Below are positions 8,023 through 44,900 of a stretch of DNA of 64,000 nucleotides, piece after piece. The notes below the pieces were generated by a model. It made no database searches. It was given only the letters and a program-made list of their open reading frames with translations, and was not told the DNA's origin. The stretch comes from Mytilus californianus (Eukaryota): NCBI RefSeq assembly GCF_021869535.1, contig NW_026262745.1:43462001-43526000 (forward strand). Reading direction: 5' to 3'. The position numbers were made by a program, and so were the translations under genes. The stretch's first letter is position 1; each line of letters begins with the position of its first letter.

Positions 8023-9442
8023 AATATCTGATAACTATAATACAAGCAATAACGCCAGTGCTCAACCATCTGCAGTTGATTCTAGCCTTCGTCTCTTGAC
8101 TTTAAATAGATAGAAACTAAGATTCGGTTCAACACTGGCCGTATTTCAGCTTTGAGAAGGGTTGGACTTTTGATTAAGTTCGAGTCGAACAATACAGTTG
8201 ATACACAGTCAATTATCAAAACTTAAATTGACAATTTGAACCAGCGTAATAAGATTTTTAAAATCGCAGATCGCCGTGGTGAAATACAGTTCACGAATAT
8301 CTGGATGATTCTCTCGAAAATGTTTCTATTGGTGAAAGACGCAGTAATTACGTGTAGATTGTTAACAACTGAACAGTTTATGTAGAGCGGGTTGGTCCTA
8401 TCTAATCGAAAGCAGACTGTTTATTGTAATTTTACGTTCGTCACTTAATGCATACTGACAAAGTAAACGTTCATGCTATTTAGTGTTGTATTCATATAAT
8501 TATGTTCAGTTTTTTGGTTTTAGTGATTGCTTTATTTTTGCAGAATAAAGAAAGTGATGACACGGTAGTTTTCCGTCTTTTTAGAATAGATTCGTTGCCT
8601 TGTTCTCTGAAATCTAATTGTTAATTTTGTTTTTGGTCATGCTTATGTAGATTGTATATTGAACGGCTAAGACGTAGTACTACATTTTCCACCAATACCT
8701 ACCCAATTTACAGATATATGTATCACACAGGATTTTTTTCACGGATATTTATTAGTACGAACTTAAAGGGTCTTTACTCTATAATTGTATGCATGTTTCA
8801 TGTCAGCAGGTACTTTTTTAGCTTGCTTTTAGTAGATGGGAACTATCTTTATATATAGAATTACCAATAATTGTTGTGTGTGTACTTGTGTTAATGTACA
8901 CCATGTAACGGTTAGGAGTAATTGTTTTCCTGCACTGATATTGATTGCATGTTCCTTGCCTGCCTCTTTGTAAGTCAACTTATTGAAATTTAAAGGAGAT
9001 GTTAAAAATTACATAAAACTAGTTTTATAGTAATAACGCCAGATGTTCTTGTGACCTGGCTTGACCATAAACACAATAAGTGGTTGTCGTATGCCAAATG
9101 ATAAATGTTTTTGTTATTTGAAGACTTCGATGTAGATGGCAGATTTATTCACAATTGCTTAGACTAGTATCTTGCTTGACATACATGTATATAGACATCA
9201 ATACTGTATAATTACCACTAGATGGATCGTTAACGATTGAGTCGTTGGGTTGATGTCTCATTGGCGAGAATCCTACTTCTACTTTTATTCATACAATATG
9301 TATTTGTTTTTGAGGTTACGTTTGGGGGGGGGGGGGGGGGGGGTAAATGAATACGGCAAGTTTTTTTTGTACGTGTATACTTCACGCATATGACTAAGAA
9401 ATTAATTATCTGGCTTATATATGCATTGAAGCCTTAATAATC

Positions 9443-9897
9443 TATGGAACGCCATAGCTGTCTTATGTGTCTTTTTTATTGCTTTTCTATTATACGAAGA
9501 TGCTTTTCTATTATACGATGGTGGTTTTCTATTATACGAAGGAGGTTTTCTATTATACGAAGGTGCTTTTCTATTATACGAGGGTGGTTTTATATTATAC
9601 GAAGGTGCTTTTCTATTATACGATGGTGGTTTTCTATTATACGAAGGTGCTTTTCTATTATACTAAGGTGGTTTTCTATTATACGAAGGTGCTTTTCTAT
9701 TATACGATGGTGGTTTTCTATTATACGAAGGTGCTTTTCTATTATACGATGGTGCTTTTCTATTATACGATGGTGCTTTTGTATTATACGAAGGTGCTTT
9801 TCTATTATACGATGGTGCTTTTTTATTATAATAAGGTGCTTAATTATTATGTGATGGTGGTTCCCGTGATTAACCGGAAGTGTGGAGTTTATTTGAA
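9443..9897 (+). repeat. Left TIR containing a 21-bp tandem array (about 17 units, consensus GAAGGTGCTTTTCTATTATAC)
   Basis: Array at about 9482-9860; whole segment is the reverse complement of 15379-15857 and 14930-15378. Confidence 0.95.
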
Positions 9898-9997
9898 AAA
9901 GGGACGGACCAATTGCTAATGAAATACGAAAAAAAAAAAATCAAGAAAATCAATTAAGTCTTTAAAATGAAATAGTTAGTTCAACATTTTTTAAGTA

Positions 9998-11870
9998 GAT
10001 TTTGTACCGCTTAATGGAGTCAAAAAGCGAGACATAGGTATGCTGTTTCCGGCGGCGTCAACAATGTATTAGTTTGTGATTAGGTCTAGTTTATGGTGAA
10101 GCCCTAGTGATACGTTAAAGATATTTGGTATGCAGTTGTATTAGTATTGACATATCTCATTACCATGGAGATTATTGGCCATGCCCCCTCAGTTATGGTC
10201 TATTGACTCTGAAATTATTCCTAAGAATCATGTATTAGTTTGTGATTAGGTCAATTATTGGGGAACCAATAGTGGTAAGTTAATGATACTTGGTAAGGAG
10301 TTGTATATGCATTGGCATATCTTATTTCCATGGAGATTATTTGGCCCGTCCCCTCAGTCATTGTCTATTGACTGAATTTTTTGTTTAGTTTTTATGGAGC
10401 CTGCGACTTTTCACAGAAAGCTCGACATATGGATAGTGATCGGGCGGCGTTAGCTAACTTATTAAAAGCTTTATATTTTAGGTGGAAGACCTGCATGGAT
10501 TGTTCATACTTTGTATATAGATGCTCAATGATACTTAGTTTCCGTCTGTCACATGGCCTATGTTCTTAACCCAATTTTCATGGTTCAGTGACTGCTTGAA
10601 AAAAAAGTTATGATTTTTTGTAATGTTAATTTCTCTCTTATTATGAGTAATAGGATAACTTTATTTGGTATGTGCGTACCTTGTAAGGTCCTCATGCCAG
10701 TCAGACAGTTTTCACTTGACCTCAACCTCATTTCACGGATCAGTGAACAAGGTTAAGTTTTGGTGGTGAAGTCTTTATCACAGATACTTTAAGCAGTAGG
10801 TCCAGTATTTTTGGCGTATGGAATGATTGTAAGGTGTACATGTCCATCTGGCAGGTGTCATCTGACCTTGACCTCATTTTCATGGTTCAGTGGTTATAGT
10901 TAAGCTTTTGTGTTTTGGTTATTTTTTCTTATACTATAAGCAATAGGTCAACTATATTTAGTGTATGGAATAATTGTAAGGTGTACATGTATTTCTTGTT
11001 TGGTTTATATTACCTTGACCTGATTTTTATACTCATGTTTATGTGATAGTTAGGCTTTCTATTTAGGACTATCAACATATTATCAATGTTTAGTAAAGAA
11101 GGCGAGACATTTCAGTGTGTGCACTCTTCTCATGTATTAGTTTGTGATTAGGTCAGTTTATGGGGAACCACTAATGGTAAGTTAATGATAATAGGTATAC
11201 AGTTGTATACGCATTGGCATATGCCATTTCCATGGAGATTATTTGGCCCCGCCCCTCATTCATGGTCTATTGACTTTGAATTTTTTGCTTAATTTCAATG
11301 TATTTGTTTGTGATTAGGTCAGTTTATGGGGAACCACTAGTGGTAAGTTAATGACAATTGATATGCAGTTGTATAAGCATTGGCATATGTCATTTCCATG
11401 GAGATTATTTGGCCCCGCCCCTCAGTCATGGTCTATTGACTTAAACTTTTGCTTAGTTTTCATGCATTAGTTTGTGATTAGGTTGGTTTATCGGGAACCA
11501 CTAGTGGTAGGTCAATGATATTTGGTATGCAGTTGTCATAACATTTGTTCACCTCATTACCACAAAGATTATTTGACCTTGCTCCCTCAGTTATGGTTTA
11601 TTGACTTTGAAATTTTGCTTAGTTTACATGTATTAGTTTGTGTTTAATTTTGTTTAAAGGGAATTATGATAAGTCAATGGTATTTGGTATTAGCATTGGC
11701 ACATCTCATTTCCATGGAGATTGTTTAGCCATGTACCTTCAGCCATGGTTCATTGACTTTGAATATTTGCAAAACTTGCATGTTAAAGTGTTGCTATTTT
11801 AATTTCAACATATGCATTATAAAAATTACCAATAAGGGAGACATATCTCTATGATAACAGTTTATTTATT
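9998..11870 (+). mobile_element. HINE/pearl-like non-autonomous element with about 6 internal 165-bp tandem repeats
   Basis: Starts in a T-run with aagcgagacataggtatgctgtttccggcggcgtc. Units begin (c)atgtattagtttgtgattaggtc at about 10065, 10231, 11131, 11297, 11461 and 11627. Ends with gggagacatatctctatgataacagttt. This architecture is typical of bivalve Helentron-associated interspersed elements (family assignment is inference). Confidence 0.65.
10391..11128 (+). mobile_element. Second HINE-like element nested in the 165-bp array
   Basis: Interrupts unit 2 at a T-run, and the array resumes at 11131. Has its own tgaccttgacctcattttcatggttcagtg repeats and a terminal ggcgagacatttcagtgtgtgcactctt. 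Confidence 0.65.
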
Positions 11871-13573
11871 TTAGTAAACCTGACTGGAGGAATTTCAGTA
11901 GAAAAAAATCTATTTAATTTGAATTTTCTGTGTTTGATATCTTCATACCATGACTCTAAGTTTTAAAAAGGTATCTGGGGGGGGGGGGGGACATGCCCCT
12001 CAGACCCTCTTAGAAAATTTCTCGCATTTGGCCCTCAACAGTGATACTACTAAAAAAAACTTTTAAATTAGATAAACACCTCTGCGTTATCTGTAGATGA
12101 GCATCACCACACAAGTTGGAGACTGTTCTTAGTGGGTGAACGGTAGAAGATGCCTTGAAATGAAATTTAGCTCAAGTTCAAGATAGGTGATACTCCTATA
12201 TAGCCAAATTTAATCACTGGAAAGCATTTTCGCAAATATTAGCATTGATTTCATTACATCAAAAATGGTTTTAACCCAAGTCTAATAGTAAAAATAAGTA
12301 CATTCAGCTACATACTAGTACCTCGGACAGTTTCGAAAAGTACCTGTTCGCTAAAGCTTGCCGACACATTTTTTTTTAAAATCAATGGACTTGTGTACTC
12401 CCGCAATACTTGTGACACAGTAAAACCTGTCTAAACCGAACCGATTATAGTTAGTTGAAGTGGAGACATATAAAACAAGAGATTGGAAACTCTGAATATT
12501 ATACAATAGAAAATTGAAGAGATTTCGGTCTGGAACATTTTATGACAAAATGAAGTTTTCATATTATCATGACAATATTTTGAAACTTACTAAATAACAA
12601 AGTATTGAGGGCATGTGTTGATTTTTGATACTTCTTTTACAACTTCTGTGATCGGTATATTTAGATATCTTGTTAAGTTTTTGAAAAATTAAGGAATATT
12701 TCTTAAAACTTAACTACTTTCTTTCTCTATATATGACTCTTATACATGTTATATTCTTATCAAAGCATGTGGCTGCGATATTTCTCGAGATTTCACAAAG
12801 TTGCTTATCTCTAGTATTATATGTCTCTGGTTCAAGTACTTTTTAATTTGGCAAATTGTAAGACCAATGACTTAATATTCAGGACACAATTAATGATTTT
12901 CAGTTCAAACACAAACATTTAAATATTTGTTCATTATCGGCCAAATTCTTTAAATGCACGTAAAAGTCACAGTTACATAAGTTTTCATTTAAAGCATTAT
13001 CGAAGAATTTCATTTAGCTGAACCATGTAGCCAACCTTTATATATAAAAAATAAAGATAAAACAAGGAATGGCAATAATTCGATATAAAACATCAAAAAT
13101 AGAGACATACAGCGACAACACAAAAAGGAAAATGTACAGAAGGTAGAGAGAAGTCCCGACTTGGTACAGGCACTCTGTCAAAACTTGGCAGAGTGGTGGG
13201 GTTGAACCATGTTTATGGGTACACTAACCTTTCCCCCCCAATCTACTCGACTTCCTATCAAGATTCGAAAGACGCGCAGCAAAAAGACTTGCACAATACA
13301 ATTGCCAACTCAGCGTCCATATAAGTTAGAAAATTTGTTTATAATAAATACTAAAATAGTAAGAGGATATACAGATCTGTACATTGTACATGTACTACCT
13401 CTACACAAAATAATACAGTTACATATAACCAATATACCACTGTAAAGCTTGAAGTTGTTGAAAAGTCATGGGGTTTTATAAGATTAAGTATATAAAGAAG
13501 TTATGCAGTTATTCATTTACGTTCAAGATATGAAGGAAATTTAGTAAATTACAAATAAGTTTTAATAACCAGT

Positions 13574-14918
13574 TTAGTTATTTCTTTCAATGACTTCCAA
13601 ACATTCAAGATAATAATCTATTCCAAAGTTAGTATTGCTTCTTATCAATTGTCGAGTTGAATCCAGCCTGCATTGATCACTTATCATGCGTGCAAGGGGT
13701 CCAAATATTAGTCTCTCGCCCTCTTCTACATCATTTTGATCCACATAGCCTTCAATTCCATAATCTTGCAAATTTGCTTCTCCTTCGGTAATTCCTACGG
13801 CATTTTGAAGTTGTCCTGAAGTCCACAAGCTCAATGGAGATGAATTAACAGTGCGTAGTCTATGACCAGCCCATGCCTCTGCCAAAAATTGAAGCTTCCT
13901 GTTTAGTTCGTCCATGAAAACAAAGTGGAGAGCAGCTAAGTTTGTCAGTTTTAGTGGGTCTAGATAACCTTCATCTTCCATGAAATAAAATAAGTTGTAA
14001 AAGTAACTAAGCACACCTTCATACACATCTCTCCATAGTCTCTCAATCCGTTGATTATGAGTGCTTTTTCCCGTTACCATACTGTTGGGCCTTTTTGAAT
14101 CAACATGTAGTTTGCCACAGAAACATTTTCCAATCCTTTGTCAGACCTAACTTTATTGGGTATCCCATACTTTGCATCACCGGAGAAGAAACGATCCAAA
14201 ACTGTTCTTGATGTGTTGTTGTCGGTACATTTTAAAAATGTTATCAATCGACTAAACCCGTCAATGCCACCTACAATAACAAATCTCCACCGGACAAGTT
14301 TATGATTTGTATCTATGTGCCAGAGGTGATTTGGACCAATTAGATTGTAAACACGCCTATTAAGCCTACCAGTACGTCTCGCCTGTACACCGGCGGTATC
14401 TAATCGATGCATACACTCCCTAGTCTCCATCTCTGTACTCTTATGCCTTTTAATAGAAGCATCTGTTGCAATAGTGTTTCGCCACACAATGGAAACTCTT
14501 TCATTATTTGTCCAAGTGTCAAGTCTAAATCACTGTCATCAATTTGTGTAAAATTCATTTTGCTTAATCCAAACTGTGACATTCTTCGGTAAATGGTGCT
14601 TTCAGACACGGACAACAATTTAGAAATGTCGGATATTTTAAATCCATTTTCAAGAACAGACTTTGGAATATCAAATTTCGGAGGGCCGCATTCAGAGTTT
14701 ATTTTATTAGGGGCAGACGTTCCATATTTTACACATTCAGTTCTTAACTTCATCATATCTGCCCTACTAGATACACCTAATATTTCAATTTCATGTGTCG
14801 AAAGCCTACATACAACGTCTGGAGTGATTTTCTCTCTCTCAAAGTTTAGAAATGCTTGCTGCAAGTTTAATTTCTGTAAAACGTTTAACATTTTAGTATT
14901 CACAGCCATGGCCGCCAT
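13574..14918 (-). pseudogene. IS3EU/IS481-like integrase-core (DDE) transposase, two frameshifts
   Basis: Three overlapping ORFs (14918-14400, 14487-14074, 14080-13574) join into one protein: HTH (FKISDISKLLSVSESTIYRRM), GPNHLWHIDTNHKL..GGIDGFSR, VRSDKGLEN, GKSTHNQRIERLWRDV. Single-base losses at about 14420 and 14085. Confidence 0.9.
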
Positions 14919-14958
14919 GTTGGTTCGGTGACATTCAAATACACGCCACGCTTCCGGT
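14912..14958 (-). promoter_or_regulatory. Candidate transposase promoter motifs (YY1-like AACATGGCGG over the ATG; ETS-like ACCGGAAG in the inner TIR)
   Basis: Motif match only: plus-strand ccgccatgtt at 14912-14921 and cttccggt at 14951-14958. Confidence 0.3.
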
Positions 14959-15378
14959 TAATCACGGAAACCACCATCACATAATAAAAAAGCACCTTAT
15001 TATAATAAAAAAGCACCATCGTATAATAGAAAAGCACCATCGTATAATAGAAAAGCACCATCGTATAATAGAAAACCACCTTCGTATAATAGAAAACCAC
15101 CATCGTATAAAAGAAAAGCACCTTCGTATAATAGAAAACCACCTTCGTATAATAGAAAACCACCATCGTATAATAGAAAAGCACCTTCGTATAATAGAAA
15201 ACTACCTTCGTATAATAGAAAAGCACCTTCGTATAATAGAAAACCACAATCGTATAATAGAAAAGCACCTTCGTATAATAGAAAAGCACATTCGTATAAT
15301 AGAAAACCACCATCGTATAATAGAAAAGCACCTTCGTATAATAGAAAAGCAATAAAAAAGACACATAAGACAGCTATG
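14930..15378 (-). repeat. Inner copy of the right TIR with 21-bp array (about 17 units), lacking the terminal 10 bp
   Basis: Ends ...cagctatg and then restarts at acattcaaatacacgcc (15379). Confidence 0.95.
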
Positions 15379-15857
15379 ACATTCAAATACACGCCACGCT
15401 TCCGGTTAATCACGGAAACCACCATCACATAATAAAAAAGCACCTTATTATAATAAAAAAGCACCATCGTATAATAGAAAAGCACCATCGTATAATAGAA
15501 AAGCACCATCGTATAATAGAAAAGCATCTTCGTATAATAGAAAACCACCTTCGTATAATAGAAAACCACCATCGTATAAAAGAAAAGCACCTTCGTATAA
15601 TAGAAAACCACCTTCGTATAATAGAAAACCACCATCGTATAATAGAAAAGCACCTTCGTATAATAGAAAACTACCTTCGTATAATAGAAAAGCACCTTCG
15701 TATAATAGAAAACCACCATCGTATAATAGAAAAGCACCTTCGTATAATAGAAAAGCACCTTCGTATAATAGAAAACCACCATCGTATAATAGAAAAGCAC
15801 CTTCGTATAATAGAAAAGCAATAAAAAAGACACATAAGACAGCTATGGCGTTCCATA
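15379..15857 (-). repeat. Outer right TIR with 21-bp array (about 18 units)
   Basis: Ends cagctatggcgttccata, followed by the TSD ataatc. Confidence 0.95.
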
Positions 15858-15932
15858 ATAATCATTCTGCATGACTTTATATGTATAACTCTTCTATGCA
15901 ATTCTTTGGATAAATTTAAAGATATGAGTGGA

Positions 15933-17140
15933 TTAAAGTCTTGTGTCTTCTATTATATCAGAATCGAGACCATTATAGTATCCATTGAGTTCATTAGATG
16001 TTACGCCTTTGAAGTCTGGTATCAAATTTGTAACACTTGTTGTCACATATACTTTCGTTTCTGACTTTTCATGTTCGATTTGCATATCTTTTTCTCTCTT
16101 TTCAAATTTCCCTCTATGCATTTTCACTATAATTGTCATTAAAATTGTAAAGAAAAGAACAATTGCCCCATAAAATGTCATTTGATGAAAAAACATGTCA
16201 TAACCATGATGCTGATAGAGATATCCAATTACCCAAAGGTATGACATGGCACCCAAAGCCATACCCATAACAATAAACGTTATGGCTACTCCAGTGACCT
16301 CAAGGTGAGCATTAGCCCAACCTAAGCCAGAAGGAAATATTGGCCCAACACATAATCCCATCATTATAGTTAAAATCCATAATGCCAAGTCGTTTTCATG
16401 CGCAAAAATTTCTAACAGAATTCCTGTAACTAAAGTTCCACACACTTCAACCGGAAGTAAGATACGAATTGGTATGAACCGTCCGGTAAATATACCAATA
16501 AATCGACCGACCGCAAAACTTATCCAGTATACGGTATTTATGAGGGATGCGTCATCGCCTGAAAATTTATGTTTGTCTATGGAATAACTTCTTATAAACT
16601 TTCCATACAAAGCGTCACCACCGCCTATATTAAAGAAACACAAAAATAACACAATGAAAATTTGAATACCAAACCATCTATCACCATCTGTACATGTTGC
16701 GGGATCGACTAATCTTACAACTTTCCGAAAGTTACTCTCCTTGGCGTCAACTTGTTTTTCTGGAGTTAAAATTATATGCCGAGAACAGAACTGATAAAAA
16801 TAATACACAATCGATACGGAAGCTATGACGATTGCAACAATCAAATATGCTGTCTCTATCTTGGATTCTTTTAGATATTCCATTGTAGTATTTTTATTAG
16901 TACTATTTGTACGCGGAAAGGGTGATGTGTTTTGTATCGATGTTACCAAAATATTTTGTACGAGAGATATATTTGGCATTACAGTTGAAGTGACATTTTC
17001 AAGTGACGGCGCCAACACTGCCAGGAATGGATTTGCTATTTGCGGAGCGAGGACTGATCCCATTCCAAACCCGAAGTGCAGAAGGTGTAAAGGTCCAGTT
17101 GCTTTTTTGTCCCATAGCTGTATGAGAACTCTCTGTCCGA
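15933..17140 (-). CDS. MFS transporter (MFSD4 / sodium-dependent glucose transporter 1-like), exon 3 of 3
   Basis: Acceptor tttttgcAG at 17142-17141, phase 1. Motifs GQRVLIQLW..LHLLHFGFGMGSVLAPQIANPFL, FFNIGGGDALYGKF and YWISFAVGRFIG, with multiple TM helices. The joined CDS is 108+292+1208 = 1608 nt (535 aa) with no stop. Confidence 0.9.
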
Positions 17141-17629
17141 CTGCAAAAATATGACAAACATAAGATATGTGTTTCATTGATGTAGCGGAATATCATAGTC
17201 ATCTTATAACAAGAATTTCCTTTGATAACAGTCTTAGTATTTGTTTTTGTTTTTTTTTTGTAATACAACATATAATACATTAGTCAGTAAGGAACGATTT
17301 GATTTATAATTTTAGTACATTTGTGTTTTATTCCTGATCTCAATTCATTGAAGAAAAATTATGTCATATTAAATACACCACAGTTTAAAGTTTTAGGTAT
17401 GCGCTCGAGACAACCTTTATAATATTGTGGCAGAGGTAAATAAATCCTTATATAATCTTGTTGGCTATATCGGTCATTTTTCAAGTTTTTGTCCCACTAC
17501 CATGTACTCCACATCTACTTTATTTTATAAGATCGATTGAAGTTCACGTCCCCCAATCAATTATTGGAAAAATAATCAGTATGACAACCAGAAATGAGAT
17601 ATAAATACGAATCCTATTCGATTACTTAA

Positions 17630-34375: not shown

Positions 34376-35166
34376 TGTCGAGTGGCCCTTCACATTATCA
34401 CATTTCAATGTTCAGTGCACCACATAATCCGGGTAAAACTATAATTTGGTATATAATTTTATTTTGAACGGAAAGAAAGAACGAACGGACGCACAGATCA
34501 GTAAATATAATATTCCCTTGCTATCATAAGTTGGTCATTAAACTAAAATGATCATCCTACATAACTAAACTGCAATCAAATATTCCGTACGTATTTGCAT
34601 AAGTTAGAACGCCAAACATTTCATAATAAAATTGTGATGAATGCCGTTAAATCACTCATACATTTGCACAAACTCATCCTAGAATCCATACGTTATTATA
34701 ATTAAAGACAAGAAGTAAAAAAATAACTGATTAAAGTAAAGTGTAATCATATTTTTCCTTGAAGATGCATCCTCATCAATTCCATTTGATAAAATTTTAC
34801 GGAAAGGTGAAAAAGTACTATCAGAGATCTGATTTTCTACCGTTAACAAAAGTATCTTCAAATAAATGATAGACGTATGCTATAAAAAACCAAGGCAAGA
34901 GGTAAGTCGTGTACACATGTTACATTTCGTCGTGTTTGAAACTCTCTCGCTTCAGATTTCATTAATTCTATTTTTTCAAACTTAATTTTGATTTAAAAAA
35001 TTCACCCTTTGAGGAATAAATATATGGGTCAAGTGAAATGATGAAGTAATGATTGGTTCATTTGACTACCGGTAACTGAATTAATTATTTCCTTAAAAGA
35101 TGGTTGTCAATAAAATAATCCCGAATTTAATAAATAAAATATGTAAAGAATTAAAAAAGCAGATTG

Positions 35167-37270
35167 TAAAATTGAGAATGGAAATGGGGAATGTGTCTAA
35201 GAGACAACAACCCGACCATAGAGCAGACAACAGCCGGAGGCTACCAATGGGTCTTCAATGTAGCGAGAAACTCCCGCACCCGAAGGCGTCCTTCAGCTGG
35301 CTCTTAAACAAATATGTATTTTTCATTTTTTAGTAGCAACAAACAAATGAACTATGTCAATTGGACATGCTTTTATACTAATAGTATATCCGCCCTTGAA
35401 TTTTTACTTGATAACATTTTTGTTCGCTTTGGAGATTCCGTATATCGTCAAGTTATCGGAATTCCAATGAGGACTAACTGTACACCACTTATTGCGGACC
35501 TGTTTTTGTATTGTTATGAGTTACAATTTATGACTAAAATCAGCAAAGACCCATCGAAACAACATCTGATACAAAAAATTAACAATACTTTTAGATATTT
35601 GGATGATATATTGGCTCTCAATAATGACGACTTCAGTATGTTTACTAAAGAAATTTATCCTGTTGAACTTACTTTAAATAAAGCTAATACTAACAATGAC
35701 CACTGTCCTTTCCTCGATCTTGATATCTATATCATTAACGGGAAGCTTAATACAAAAATTTATGATAAAAGAGATTATTTTTCATTTCCTATCGTTAATT
35801 ATCCATTTTTAGATGGTGACGTTCCCTTGTCACCATCTTATGGTGTTTATATATCTCAACTTGTACGATTCGCTCGTGTATGTAACAACGTATTAGATTT
35901 TAGCGCGAGAAATTTATGTATTACTGAAAAATTATTACACCAGGGTTTTCTATATCATAAACTAGTCAAAACATTTACTAAATTTTATCATCGGTATAAG
36001 GACATCACTCGTAAATATAACTCAACATGCAGATATCTTATACGTTCGGGTATTTCACATCCAATCTTTTATGGTAATATTCTTTACAAAGCACAAAAAT
36101 GTCAGTATTCACCTCAAAAGCTAACAAAACCTTTAAACAGACTTATTAAGAAGGGATATAGTTACGATACTGTTGTCAGGTCATTAAAGATTGCATATTT
36201 TGGCTTTAATATTAATTCACTTATAGGGTCTTTGCATCGGAATTAAACACATTTATTCTAAAACAAGTTGTTGGCATGACACGGGTTATGTTCTTCTCAT
36301 ATATTTTATGGCGGTATAATACTGAACCCCTAACAGGAGGGATTGTGCCTGATATTCATATGATGAAGACATAATCTTTTAATCAGTTTAATTGAGGTCT
36401 GGAGCTGGCATGTCAGTAACTGCTAGTAGTCTGTTGTTATTTATTTATTTATTATTGTCATTTTGTTTATTTTCTTTTGTTTCCTATTCTGATATCGGAC
36501 TCGGACTTCTCTTATACTGAGTTTTACTGTACGTACTGTTGTGCGTTTGTTTTTTCTACATTGGCTAGAGGTATAGGGGGAGGGTTGAGATCTCAAAAAA
36601 CATGTTTAACCCCACCGCATTTTTGCGCCTGTCCCAAGTCAGGAGCCTCTGGCCTTTGCTAGTCTTCTATCATTTTTAAATTTAGTTTCCTGTGTATAAT
36701 GTGGAGTTTAGTATGACGTCCATTATCACTGAACTAGTATACATATTTGTTTAAGGGCCAGCTGAAGGACGCCTTCGGGTGCGGGAGTTTCTCGCTGCAT
36801 TGAAGACCCATTGGTGGCCTTCGGCTCTATGGTCGGGTTGTTGACTCTTTGACACATTCCCCATTTCCATTCTCAATTTTATGTATACTAGTTCAGTGAT
36901 AATGGACGTCATACTAAACTCCAAATTATACACAGGAAACTAAAATTAAAAATGATACAAGACTAACAAAGGCCAGAGACTCCTGACTTGGGACAGGCGC
37001 AAAAATGCTGCGGGGTTAAACATGTTTTTTAAGATCTCAATCCTCCCCCTATACCTCTAGCCAATGTAGAAAAAACAAACGCACAACAATACGTACAGTA
37101 AAATTCAGTATAAGAGAAGTCCGAGTCCGATTGTCAGAATAGGAAACAAAAGAAAATAAACAAAATGACAAAAATACATAAATAACAACAGACTACTAGC
37201 AGTTACTGACATGCCAGCTTCAGACCTTAATTAAACTGATTAAAAGATTATGTTTTCATCATATGAATAT
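35167..37270 (+). mobile_element. 5'-truncated Naiad-type Penelope-like retroelement with inverted pLTR segments on both sides
   Basis: RT C-terminal ORF plus 3' UTR ending ccatttccattctcaattttat (36882). 35167-35319 is the reverse complement of about 36739-36882, and 36880-37270 is the reverse complement of 36352-36745. Confidence 0.85.
35314..36246 (+). CDS. PLE (Naiad) reverse transcriptase, C-terminal half; probably inactive
   Basis: YRQVIGIPMRTNCTPLIADLFLY, FRYLDD, FLDL, IYDKRD, SYGVYISQLVRFARVC. No C-terminal GIY-YIG, consistent with the N-terminal-EN Naiad clade. 5'-truncated, and the conserved GIPMG is changed to GIPMR. Confidence 0.85.
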   Translation: MYFSFFSSNKQMNYVNWTCFYTNSISALEFLLDNIFVRFGDSVYRQVIGIPMRTNCTPLIADLFLYCYELQFMTKISKDPSKQHLIQKINNTFRYLDDILALNNDDFSMFTKEIYPVELTLNKANTNNDHCPFLDLDIYIINGKLNTKIYDKRDYFSFPIVNYPFLDGDVPLSPSYGVYISQLVRFARVCNNVLDFSARNLCITEKLLHQGFLYHKLVKTFTKFYHRYKDITRKYNSTCRYLIRSGISHPIFYGNILYKAQKCQYSPQKLTKPLNRLIKKGYSYDTVVRSLKIAYFGFNINSLIGSLHRN

Positions 37271-37687: not shown

Positions 37688-39217
37688 ATGATTGCCAGTA
37701 TTTTGTATGTTAGCATCCTTCTGAGTCACGTCATTATCGAAACTGATGCCAAGAAAATTTTGTTCCTGATGGCTCAATCAAAAAGTCATATGTTTCCGGC
37801 AATACCTGTTGCGGAGGAGATGGTAAAATTAAACCATACAACTACTTTTGTGGTAGCAGCTAGAATGAAAGAGGCGTTGGCATCTGAAGGCATTAAACTT
37901 TCACCTTCTATCATTTCAAAGAGTTTTGATAAGTATTATTATGAGGACATTATTCGAGTTACGCTTGAGAAAATGGCACAAGGTTCAAAAATTGAATCGC
38001 AGGTGAAATGGTTACAAGGAACTAACGCTCTTTGTCACGAATTTATGAATGATAAGAAATTGATAGACGAATTAAAAGACCAGAGATTTGATATTGCTGT
38101 TATAGACTACGCACCTGTTCTTTGTTTCACTATTATGGCATATAAACTAGATCTGCCATTTGTCTCTTTTGGTGCCTTCATAGATCCAACCTTAAATAGA
38201 GTTCCATTGAACCCAGCTTTCACGCCAACATTTTTTTCCGATTTCAATGATAAGATGACATTCTTGGAGAGAGTTTGGAATACACTCCGATACATTTTTT
38301 TAGTTGCTAGACCTGCAGCTCCAACGTTGGAGAATTTGGCAGTCAAGTATGTCCCAGAAAAACCAGCCATCTCTAATCAAGAAGCAAAACAAAAAGCTAT
38401 GCTTTATATACATGACAGTGACATTCTATTTGATTATCCACAACCATTTCCTCCAAATGTAATACTTTGTGGCGGTCTTGCTGCACATCCGTCAAAAAAA
38501 GTATCAAAAAAACTTGACACATTTGCATCATCAAACAAAGGCTTGGTAGTTGTTTCTTTTGGTAGTATTTTCAAAACATTTCCGAATAATACCTTCGGGA
38601 AAATGATTGAAGCTTTTAAACAAATATCTGATCTTAACTTTGTGATTCGACAAGGAGATACAGAGGAGACAACAGACAATATTTTGAGACTTCCATGGAT
38701 CCCGCAGAACGATTTACTCGGTCATCCCCGTACCGTTTTATTTATAACTCATTGCGGTAGGAGTGGAAGTATGGAGGCTATCTACCACGGAATCCCTGTT
38801 ATTACATTTCCCTTAAGTATTGACCAACCTTACAATGCAGCTGTTATGGAAGACAAAGGTTATGGTATCAAGATGGATTTACATGATTTTTCTACTGAGG
38901 AATTAATTGCCAATATTAAACAAGTAGCTTTTACCGATAAGTATAAGCGTAATATTAAGCAAGCATCGGACATATTCCACAGTCGCCCACAAACTCCTGC
39001 AGAAAGGGCAGCTTATCATATCGATTTAGTTGCCAAGCATGGTGATAAACATTTTCGACACTTTGGGATAGATATACCATGGTATTCGTTTTATCTTGTT
39101 GATGTTATATGCTTTCTTTTGTTAATGAACATAAGCTCCTCTGTCGTAATGTATTTAGTGTTTAGGAAATGCAGAAGACATTTGAAAAACAGAGCTATTA
39201 AACTTAAAAAAGAATAA
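37688..39217 (+). CDS. UGT: UDP-glucuronosyltransferase (GT1/UGT family), 509 aa, intron-free CDS
   Basis: Signal peptide; catalytic His in QSKSHMFP; UGT signature WIPQNDLLGHPRTVLFITHCGRSGSMEAIYHGIPVITFPLSIDQ; C-terminal TM helix and dilysine-type ER-retrieval tail (KLKKE). A tttttcAG acceptor 4 nt before the ATG implies an upstream non-coding exon. Confidence 0.95.
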   Translation: MIASILYVSILLSHVIIETDAKKILFLMAQSKSHMFPAIPVAEEMVKLNHTTTFVVAARMKEALASEGIKLSPSIISKSFDKYYYEDIIRVTLEKMAQGSKIESQVKWLQGTNALCHEFMNDKKLIDELKDQRFDIAVIDYAPVLCFTIMAYKLDLPFVSFGAFIDPTLNRVPLNPAFTPTFFSDFNDKMTFLERVWNTLRYIFLVARPAAPTLENLAVKYVPEKPAISNQEAKQKAMLYIHDSDILFDYPQPFPPNVILCGGLAAHPSKKVSKKLDTFASSNKGLVVVSFGSIFKTFPNNTFGKMIEAFKQISDLNFVIRQGDTEETTDNILRLPWIPQNDLLGHPRTVLFITHCGRSGSMEAIYHGIPVITFPLSIDQPYNAAVMEDKGYGIKMDLHDFSTEELIANIKQVAFTDKYKRNIKQASDIFHSRPQTPAERAAYHIDLVAKHGDKHFRHFGIDIPWYSFYLVDVICFLLLMNISSSVVMYLVFRKCRRHLKNRAIKLKKE

Positions 39218-41959: not shown

Positions 41960-44900
41960 TCGAGTAATGACATTTTATTGGAAATCTCTAGTGAGTTGGG
42001 ATTTTGTATCTATCAATTCGATTATTTAAAGATAGTTAGATCTTGAGACTTTCCCGAGAGTCGGAAGATACCAAGGAGATATTGAAACTCATAAGTCGAA
42101 GACAAGTCAATTATCAGTTTCTTTGATTTTCAGGTAACATAGTATCAGTAAATGAAGTCTTTTGAAGTCGATTCAGTCTATTATGATGTCTGTTAAACAA
42201 TGATTTATAGGTATAATGTGTTTATAAATAATTTTTCAGCAAGATGATTGCCAGTATTTTGTATCTTAGCATCCTTCTGAGTCACGTCATTATCGAAACT
42301 GATGCCAAGAAAATTTTGTTCCTGATGGCTCAATCAAAAAGTCATATGTTTCCGGCAATACCTGTTGCGGAGGAGATGGTAAAATTAAACCATACAACTA
42401 CTTTTGTGGTAGCAGCTAGAATGAAAGAGGCGTTGGCATCTGAAGGCATTAAACTTTCACCTTCTATCATTTCAAAGAGTTTTGATAAGTATTATTATGA
42501 GAACATTATTCGAGTTACGCTTGAGAAAATGGCACAAGGTTCAAAAATTGAATCGCAGGTGAAATGGTTACAAGGAACTAACGCTCTTTGTCACGAATTT
42601 ATGAATGATAAGAAATTGATAGACGAATTAAAAGACCAGAAATTTGATATTGCTGTTATAGACTACGCACCTGTTCTTTGTTTCACTATTATGGCATATA
42701 AACTAGATCTGCCATTTGTCTCTTTTGGTGCCTTCATAGATCCAACCTTAAATCGAGTTCCATTGAACCCAGCTTTCACGCCAACATTTTTTCCGATTTC
42801 AATGATAAGATGACATTCTTGGAGAGAGTTTGGAATACACTCCGATACATTTTTTTAGTTGCTAGACCTGCAGCTCCAACGTTGGAGAATTTGGCAGTCA
42901 AGTATGTCCCAGAAAAACCAGCCATCTCTAATCAAGAAGCAAAACAAAAAGCTATGCTTTATATACATGACAGTGACATTCTATTTGATTATCCACAACC
43001 ATTTCCTCCAAATGTAATACTTTGTGGCGGTCTTGCTGCACATCCGTAAAAAAAAGTATCAAAAAAACTTGACACATTTGCATCATCAAAAAAAGGCTTG
43101 GTAGTTGTTTCTTTTGGCAGTATTTTCAAAACATTTCCGAATAATACCTTCGGGAAAATGATTGAAGCTTTTAAACAAATATCTGATCTTAACTTTGTGA
43201 TTCGACAAGGAGATACAGAGGAGACAACAGACAATATTTTGAGACTTCCATGGATCCCGCAGAACGATTTACTCGGTCATCCCCGTACCGTTTTATTTAT
43301 AACTCATTGCGGTAGGAGTGGAAGTATGGAGGCTATCTACCACGGAATCCCTGTTATTACATTTCCCTTAAGTATTGACCAACCTTACAATGCAGCTGTT
43401 ATGGAAGACAAAGGTTATGGTATCAAGATGGATTTACATGATTTTTCTACTGAGGAATTAATTGCCAATATTAAACAAGTAGCTTTTACCGATAATTATA
43501 AGCGTAATATTAAGCAAGCATCGGACATATTCCACAGTCGCCCACAAACTCCTGCAGAAAGGGCAGCTTATTATATCGATTTAGTTGCCAAGCATGGTGA
43601 TAAACATTTTCGACACTTTGGGATAGATATACCATGGTATTCGTTTTATCTTGTTGATGTTATATGCTTTCTTTTGTTAACGAACATAAGCTCCTCTGTC
43701 GTAATGTATTTAGTGTTTAGGAAATGCAGAAGACATTTGAAAAACAGAGCTATTAAGCTTAAAAAAGAATAAAAAAACAATAGATATTTAAAGATTGTTA
43801 TTTTTCAAATGATTATCAATTATCACATACTGTACACGATATATAAATGAATTTATATTATTGTTTTATGTTTTAAGTGCGCTGTTGGATTATTTGTAGA
43901 ATTTGACGTCTACCTCTTATCTAATTCTATTTAGTCAAATATATAATCAAAATGCCCTATTTGACATCATATATAATGCAGTTCTACCGATCTAAATGAG
44001 GGAATGGATTTTTTTAACAGGTGAGTCTAAATTAAATTTTCCCATTGTTTCTCCAAGTACTAAAGTTATTGACTCTAAGCAATATGTTTTTCCCAAATGA
44101 AGTAAAAATATGTTAAACTAAAACTATATATGTAGCTATATATCGCCCAGTTGATTCGATATATCAGAGTTTCTTTTTTCGGTATGATTTCGTGATAGGG
44201 ATTACTGCTGACAAGGGGACCATGCGCTAATACGATATTCAAAATCCTCTTTACAATTTAAATCGCCGAACACGAATATTCAGCACCATTTCAATTCTTC
44301 GATCGCCGAATGACAACGTTGATGCCAAATTCTCCTGCACCACTACATTTGAGTTGAGGGATATGTATTAAAATATTCTAGAACTTATCACCTTTTAAAA
44401 AAACACTTTAAAATGAATTCCTGTAAACATGAATTAAAGTATGCTCAGATCTTCCTGGTTTTTACTAGCTCAATAAAACGAACCGTTTCTATGGAGCAAC
44501 ATTCCAGCAACGCCTGCATACGGAGTATATATATCTCCCAGTTGATACAATATTCTAGGACTCGCATTTCCTATCATGAATTATTTGATAGAGGGGTGCT
44601 GCTCACAAGGAAACTATTAAACCAATACTTCCAAGTGGGAAAATTTTACGGACGCCATCATGAGTTGGTTGACGGTTATGGAATATGTTTCACAGGTGAC
44701 GATGGATATATTCTAATTGTCGTAACTACAATCCCGTCCCCTTTTCCCCGAATGTGACCTACCGAATAAGACTTATCACCGAGTTTGTACTTTCATAAGC
44801 AATACATCGGGTGCTACATGTGGAGCAGGATCTGATTTCCCTTCCGGAGAATCTGAGATTACTCCCAGTTTTTGCTGGGGTTCGTGTTGTTCAGTCTTTA

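Follow-up and report, generated by a model that had tools for sequence, protein, structure and literature searches.

A probable IS3EU/GingerRoot-type DNA transposon in a Mytilus-type mussel genome and the array-built ends of its relatives

Within a 64,000-nucleotide stretch of mussel DNA (contig NW_026262745.1, positions 43,462,001 to 43,526,000 of the forward strand), hereafter the window, positions 9443-15857 are occupied by an element of 6415 bp with exact inverted termini, starting TATGGAACGCC. The first 20 nt (9443-9462) and the last 20 nt (15838-15857) form an exact inverted pair that is unique in the window and was matched in none of 100 shuffles, and the tips read TATGG..CCATA. On either side stands the hexamer ATAATC (9437-9442 and 15858-15863), a 6-bp target-site duplication that is present as a single copy in a related, unoccupied contig (L021). 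Between the tips lie a long inverted repeat at the left, a non-coding internal segment, a broken transposase gene and a right end that is present twice. The region is most likely a single DNA transposon, of the IS3EU/GingerRoot superfamily, that inserted into a Mytilus-type mussel genome 76 bp past the stop of a major facilitator superfamily (MFS)-like open reading frame (ORF).

The left terminal inverted repeat (9443-9897, plus strand, 455 bp) opens with a tip of 37 unique nt (9443-9479), continues as a 21-bp tandem array of 17.2 units with 90% matches and no indels (9480-9841), and closes with an inner part of 56 unique nt (9842-9897). About 80% of each ~455-bp end is made of this array, and the window's 52 units of 21 bp, against an expectation of 0, all fall within the element. 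Of the 21 unit columns in the window arrays, 17-19 have an invariance of 90% or more and two are free to vary; the units carry two spacer variants that mostly alternate. Each end reads, from the outside in, as an 11-nt tip, 17-18 phased 21-bp units sharing the core ATTAYAY, and ~56 unique nt; the start of the gene lies ~15 bp beyond. Reading frames of 136-277 aa run through the arrays (9444-9854, 9467-9919, 14900-15364 and 15000-15833); these are repeat artefacts, not genes. A first-pass annotation of the same DNA had claimed an exact 6-bp ATAATC duplication, inverted termini and terminal repeats of ~450 bp composed mostly of a 21-bp array. The duplication, the termini and the array composition were all recovered, and the repeat length holds for the left end, whereas the right end consists of two tandem copies rather than one repeat.

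Of these two copies, the inner right inverted repeat (14931-15378, minus strand, 448 bp, 17 units) lacks the last 10 terminal nt, and the outer one (15379-15857, minus strand, 18 units) has the complete tip, comprising the repeat proper (15379-15847) and the last 10 nt (15848-15857). They are 99.6% identical, differing by 2 substitutions and one 21-bp unit, and meet at a 2-nt TG overlap; identity to the left repeat is 95.6% for the outer copy (455 bp versus 476 bp) and 93.9% for the inner. A single repeat stands at the corresponding end of the relatives L001, L009 and L010, which makes the doubling a recent event peculiar to the window copy, and the right end was evidently doubled by an internal tandem duplication of ~448 bp. 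Owing to that doubling, the tip is 939 bp away from the start of the gene, which begins ~15 bp inside the inner copy; the first-pass annotation had placed the transposase start about 12 bp inside the right repeat. It is unlikely that the second copy is instead an assembly error or the remnant of another element's end. Arrays of this type are difficult to assemble, the other copies have a single repeat, and neighbouring ends of separate elements do occur, with a right tip 28 bp upstream of L013 and two left tips 1540 bp apart in L014. Yet a simple collapse or expansion would not account for the 2 substitutions and the one-unit difference, exactly the last 10 nt are missing from the inner copy, which meets the outer copy at the 2-nt overlap with no duplication of its own, and the gene is contiguous with the inner copy rather than the outer, as in L009. 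For the tandem duplication itself, whose unit matches the inverted-repeat boundaries almost exactly, one guess is that replication switched templates at the borders of a hairpin made by the two ends.

The transposase pseudogene (13574-14918, minus strand) has its start ATG at 14918 and appears in the ORF listing as three overlapping pieces, the first with a weak helix-turn-helix (HTH) match and the other two splitting the Pfam domain PF24764 rva_4 (1e-36 and 8e-29). The queries were these single pieces, each ending at a frame change. Aligned with three intact coding sequences, the window copy is ~98% identical in nucleotides; it differs by 24-27 substitutions, a 12-bp indel that keeps the frame and two single-base indels that change it. 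An uninterrupted relative of 447 aa, P0151, occurs on 11 Logan contigs, is 95-96% identical in amino acids to all three pieces and ends at the same stop; the contigs with the intact gene end at the array boundary, as an assembler would leave them, and their source may be RNA or DNA. Genomic intact genes are P0269 (452 aa; M. edulis and M. galloprovincialis) and P0271 (443 aa). The first-pass annotation had counted two 1-bp lesions and foreseen intact relatives. Exactly two single-base frame changes were found, together with the 12-bp indel, and uninterrupted genes of 443-452 aa exist in M. edulis and M. galloprovincialis. The frame changes are damage: a programmed frameshift of the IS3 type was considered and rejected, as intact relatives at 95-96% identity carry the gene as one ORF. 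With its two frame changes the window gene is dead, its coding capacity lost. The catalytic D, D and E are still encoded, and these residues (D202, D259 and E292 in P0151 numbering) are invariant in 46 of 46 relatives. The earlier description of the transposon as complete is right for its ends but not for its gene, and within its known superfamily the window copy is an ordinary member, dead and decayed.

The state of the locus before insertion is represented by the Logan contig L021, which carries P0283, a 90% relative of the neighbouring MFS ORF. The contig matches window positions 9169-9442 and 15858-17165 contiguously, with a 6-bp overlap, and a three-way alignment places one ATAATC where the window carries the element. 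The comparison shows that the element inserted into a single ATAATC, duplicating it, and it answers in the positive the empty-site check proposed in the earlier annotation. L021 displays the unoccupied state, which is equally compatible with cut-and-paste and with copy-out-paste-in transposition, the mode of bacterial IS3. The orthologous M. californianus locus (L020) is not collinear near the insertion point and gave no empty-site answer.

Further copies extend the picture. In M. edulis, L009 is 3100 bp long, has the same 37-nt tips, is flanked by CAGATT and contains an intact gene; L013 represents a second mussel family, with a transposase 57% identical and TGTTAG flanks; and L019, from the coral Desmophyllum pertusum, spans 8.6 kb between CTTTTT flanks. 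Another right tip lies 28 bp from the left end of L013 (L013:7532-7542, M. edulis), and in an oyster the left end is preceded, 1540 bp upstream and in direct orientation, by another left end that carries a 21-bp array itself (L014:5811-6293). The M. edulis locus L011 (9225-9958) combines an intact 443-aa gene and a 32-unit array (673 bp) with a truncated tip, and has no second end within 10 kb. A 546-aa RefSeq model, L012, was dropped as a candidate, having no array and degenerate tips only.

Between the left repeat and the gene lies a non-coding internal segment of ~3.4 kb (9898-13337), on which the first-pass annotation was silent. It is rich in tandem repeats, with ~165-bp units at 10064-10373 and 11131-11800 and ~147-bp units at 10520-11024, and contains no ORF of at least 80 aa. 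The segment is collinear with L010 and L001, which have the same repeats, and no other copy of it is found elsewhere in the window. The long non-coding part common to the window, L010 and L001 (window ~9967-13220) is mostly absent from L009, so short and long forms of the family exist; L009 and the window are 94% identical over the stretch that runs from the inner right repeat through the gene, and the region 3' of the transposase stop (13338-13573, minus strand) is present in all family copies. An extra segment of ~340 bp in L009 (11595-11936), L010 and L001 is not in the window copy of the element. Copies of that segment stand elsewhere in the window, at 35163-35315 and 36552-37073, two of them head to head around 36881. 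The internal ~165-bp and ~147-bp repeats recall the 160-180 bp satellites common in bivalves (PMC8268682).

The end design recurs well beyond the window copy. L013 shares the same 27-nt right tip and has arrays of 9.8 units of 21 bp and 5.5 units of 19 bp; L014, from the oyster Crassostrea angulata, has the tip TATGGAACGCC and 24 units of 21 bp, with its ATG ~110 bp further in; a scallop locus (L018) has the same 20-nt tip and 28 units of 21 bp; and the coral element L019 has the same 11-nt tip and 21-bp arrays of 24 and 17 units. The core ATTAYAY, at 21-bp spacing and on the same strand from the tip inward, is found in the window's three arrays and in L013, L014, L018 and L019, and the rest of the unit differs. 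A metagenome survey covered 80 loci, 53 of which had at least 300 bp upstream of the estimated start. Among these 53, a short-period upstream array was present in 33, with a period of 19-22 bp in 21 of the 33; the period was 21 bp in all five arrays beside relatives at least 50% identical, and the other arrays had periods of 12-14, 24, 33 or 39 bp. The idea of a universal 21-bp period was rejected on the basis of this survey. In nine metagenome loci, with transposases only 44-48% identical, the 11-nt tip (at most 1 mismatch) precedes the array, and a text search of the literature for that tip returned unrelated primer lists only. Array-built ends are the norm of the lineage in mussels, oysters, scallops and corals, and not peculiar to the window copy.

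The arrays might alternatively be neutral minisatellites that grew inside the ends, the unique tip being the only transposase site. Their unit number varies from ~10 to 32 between copies and ends, two unit columns are free to vary, the periods differ among distant relatives, and L011 has 32 units beside a truncated tip, all of which would suit neutral growth. Against this, the arrays keep the same place and orientation in families from two phyla with transposases only 35-57% identical, the core ATTAYAY is kept while the remaining unit changes, and arrays stand at both ends of each complete element in inverted symmetry; moreover, the transposases closest in structure (TnsB, MuA and IstA) generally act on ends with several sites. 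Neutral growth is regarded as an improbable explanation, and a role of the arrays in recognition by the transposase is preferred. Two observations on 21-bp repeats in oysters may be recorded here. An unrelated foldback-like stretch at L014:1344-2872 also has 21-bp units in inverted arrays. Additionally, CgiSat43 of Crassostrea gigas is a 21-bp satellite of 66.7% AT that is found on all ten chromosomes and bears no transposon annotation (PMC8268682); it agrees with the L014 unit in length and AT content, the two properties compared.

Three domains are assigned to the transposase. A SAM-fold (sterile alpha motif) N-terminal domain (14724-14897, minus strand) is proposed from an AlphaFold2 model and Foldseek, with weak sequence matches; an HTH domain (14571-14663, minus strand) is matched by Pfam HTH_23 and related families at E 4e-4 and weaker, inside the alignment with the IS481 and IS3 hidden Markov models (HMMs); and a DDE core with RNase H fold (Pfam rva_4; 13799-14352, minus strand, outer bounds only) is placed by profile and model. 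In the AlphaFold2 model of P0151 (mean confidence score, pLDDT, 79), a five-helix N-terminal domain (residues 1-57) precedes the HTH (81-115), a helical region (127-183) and the RNase H-fold core (198-351). A Foldseek search with the full-length model returned TnsB, IstA, MuA and retroviral integrases (E 2.5e-5 to 1e-3) and did not separate the bacterial transposases from the retroviral integrases. Modelled alone, the N-terminal 66 residues reach a pLDDT of 84.5, and the top 50 Foldseek matches of this domain are all SAM domains, tankyrase first, with TM scores of 0.65-0.72 and a root-mean-square deviation of ~2 A. PDB-sequence searches, whether single-piece or profile, gave weak matches only. 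The order shown by the model is thereby a predicted SAM fold, HTH, helical linker and DDE core. No paper linking the sterile alpha motif with a DDE transposase was found in the literature collection searched. The coral element L019 has a second ORF of 438 aa (14182-15495, minus strand), which begins just inside the opposite inverted repeat, mirroring the transposase; it shares with the transposase only its SAM-like N-terminus (32% over 56 aa; Pfam SAM_1 5e-4), and the rest has no clear family.

With respect to classification, an intact relative was matched in NCBIfam by IS481 (E 1.4e-12) and IS3 (E 4e-9), in a collinear alignment that takes in the HTH as well as the first half of the core, and in Pfam by rva_4 (1e-73), rve (3e-6) and weak HTH families. 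Pfam scans found no integrase zinc finger, chromodomain, protease or polymerase domain, and no retroviral, Ginger1 or Polinton domain. IS3EU elements are marked by 6-bp duplications and TA..TA tips (PMC10045372), fungal IS3EU families having TAYGG..CCRTA tips (PMC12730594). GingerRoot elements likewise have 6-bp duplications and mostly TA..TA tips (PMC6839031), and GingerRoot has been merged with IS3EU at 99% bootstrap (PMC10045372). The window copy has the 6-bp duplication, TATGG..CCATA tips, terminal inverted repeats and a DDE transposase with no HHCC zinc finger, and the IS3EU marks are also present in three further complete copies (L009, L013 and L019). The IS3EU type and the IS3/IS481-like, integrase-core transposase proposed in the first-pass annotation are both upheld by these results, with rva_4 as the domain and IS481 and IS3 as the nearest named families, and neither of the two refuting outcomes named in that annotation tells against them.

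Membership in another integrase-type group (Ginger1, Ginger2/TDD or Polinton/Maverick), with only a superficial likeness to IS3 and IS481, is highly improbable. The core is of the rve type with an RNase H fold, the best matches in structure and in PDB sequence include retroviral integrases, and 6-bp duplications occur also in Polinton and Ginger2 (PMC6839031). However, the TATGG..CCATA tips are neither TG..CA nor AG..TC (PMC6839031, PMC10045372), and Pfam rve gives a poorer match than the IS481 and IS3 models, which align collinearly with the HTH plus core. Compared with Ginger1 and Ginger2/TDD as defined in PMC6839031, the tips are TA..TA rather than TG..CA, the duplication is 6 bp (4 bp in Ginger1) and gypsy-integrase motifs are lacking; compared with Polinton/Maverick, whose elements are large and encode a DNA polymerase among other genes, the canonical copy is 3.1 kb long with a single gene, and the tips are not AG..TC.

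Points in common with IS3EU are the 6-bp duplication, the TA..TA tips and the terminal inverted repeats, as well as a single DDE transposase whose N-terminal region is of HTH type and lacks an HHCC zinc finger and whose first catalytic D stands ~200 residues into the chain. The available IS3EU descriptions (PMC10045372, PMC12730594) do not include array-built ends of 400-600 bp, the 11-nt tip or a SAM-fold N-terminus, features that Repbase entries may already show; for the fungal families the repeats are given as 'longer than 30 bp'. GingerRoot resembles the element in its 6-bp duplication, in tips that are mostly TA..TA, in a DDE transposase related to integrases and in having relatives among corals and other animals (PMC6839031). 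GingerRoot repeats, in Selaginella and animals, measure 100-150 bp, and the text of PMC6839031 never mentions 'tandem repeat' or 'subterminal'; captured gene fragments, which GingerRoot often carries (PMC6839031), are not seen in the window element.

More distant systems offer partial parallels. The bacterial IS481 and IS3 families have an HTH followed by an rve-type DDE core and are the best named HMM matches. Their ends are short, and IS3 uses a programmed frameshift between two ORFs and a circle intermediate. Their tips are TG..CA (PMC10045372), unlike the TA..TA of the window element. The best full-length structural matches are TnsB of Tn7 and of CRISPR-associated transposons (CAST), MuA of Mu and IstA of IS21, and the arrangement in the mussel family differs from theirs in its 10-32 head-to-tail units, the SAM domain in the transposase and the absence of a helper gene. 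Transposons of the TnsB, MuA and IstA type have ends with 2-4 spaced transposase-binding sites and need helper ATPases. Among eukaryotic transposons, Drosophila FB and Galileo, and En/Spm with its subterminal repeats, have long inverted ends that consist mainly of short tandem repeats, present in different numbers from copy to copy. The array-built, variable ends described here are similar to those of such foldback or array-bearing elements, whose transposases belong to other superfamilies. Repeats form the bulk of a true foldback element, whereas the inverted repeats account for ~21% of the window copy and ~28% of the 3.1-kb copy. The label 'foldback-like' in the first-pass annotation is only a loose description of an element of which the repeats form about a fifth.

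Several points weigh against the interpretation as a whole. The matches of 47.8 bits to IS481 and 36.1 bits to IS3 fall below the curated NCBIfam cut-offs of 224 and 160 bits, respectively, and because the scores are so far below, the link to the bacterial families is distant. The assignment to IS3EU/GingerRoot is a probable one, based on published marks and HMM matches. The SAM assignment comes from a predicted model, for which the Foldseek E-values are only 0.02-0.3. Array copy number ranges from ~10 to 32 units; the left array of L009 has 5 core matches with no clear 21-bp phasing, possibly reflecting indels; and, given the other periods found in distant relatives, strict two-turn phasing is not universal. 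The L021 flanks are 78-91% identical to those of the window, which places L021 outside the same population and makes it another species, a diverged haplotype or a paralogous locus. Finally, no duplication is formed by the flanks of L010 (9632-16038, M. galloprovincialis), although both tips and an intact gene of 452 aa are present; L010 may be two elements or a rearrangement.

A working model can nevertheless be outlined. The 21-bp units are predicted binding sites for the HTH domain and, 21 bp being two helix turns, would all lie on one face of the DNA. The SAM domain may link the bound transposase molecules and so help to pair both ends, after which the DDE core would cut at the TA tips and join them to target cuts staggered by 6 bp. 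The promoter of the transposase gene would lie inside the adjacent inverted repeat, and the window copy would be movable only with transposase from an intact relative. More broadly, it is possible, if doubtful, that an IS3EU clade of cnidarians and molluscs uses an undescribed synaptic machine, in which SAM-HTH-DDE transposase molecules, joined through their SAM domains, form a polymer along the 10-30 phased sites of each end and the resulting protein-DNA filament pairs the ends, and which in some members, such as the coral element, a second SAM protein joins.

The surroundings of the insertion are AT-rich (30-36% GC across the window), and whole-window Rfam and tRNA scans found no RNA genes. 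The neighbouring MFS_1 ORF (15933-17177, minus strand, 414 aa) is 88% identical to a Mytilus californianus protein named 'sodium-dependent glucose transporter 1B-like', whereas in M. edulis and M. trossulus the best proteins reach only ~56%; an exact look-up of this ORF found no record. Some 100 bp upstream of the insertion point, at 9324-9343, is a run of 20 G. Further along the window are a full-length UDP-glucuronosyltransferase ORF (37688-39217, plus strand, 509 aa; UDPGT 1.6e-77) and a second such gene broken across two ORFs (42244-42813 and 43098-43772, both plus strand).

In genome annotation, ORFs that run through arrays of this kind, such as those at 9444-9854 and 15000-15833, should be counted as artefacts, and the findings suggest that some short-period bivalve satellites may be transposon ends. 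IS3EU is a named superfamily that has been barely studied. There is now a comparative set: two mussel species with intact genes, four complete copies that each bear a clean 6-bp duplication, and one empty site for the window insertion, along with an 11-nt tip conserved from coral to mussel, phased arrays with a shared core and a SAM fold that would precede the HTH. What is worth following is the conserved end design of the lineage together with its SAM domain, rather than the window copy itself, and with this material the recognition and pairing of IS3EU ends become approachable by sequence comparison and structural work.

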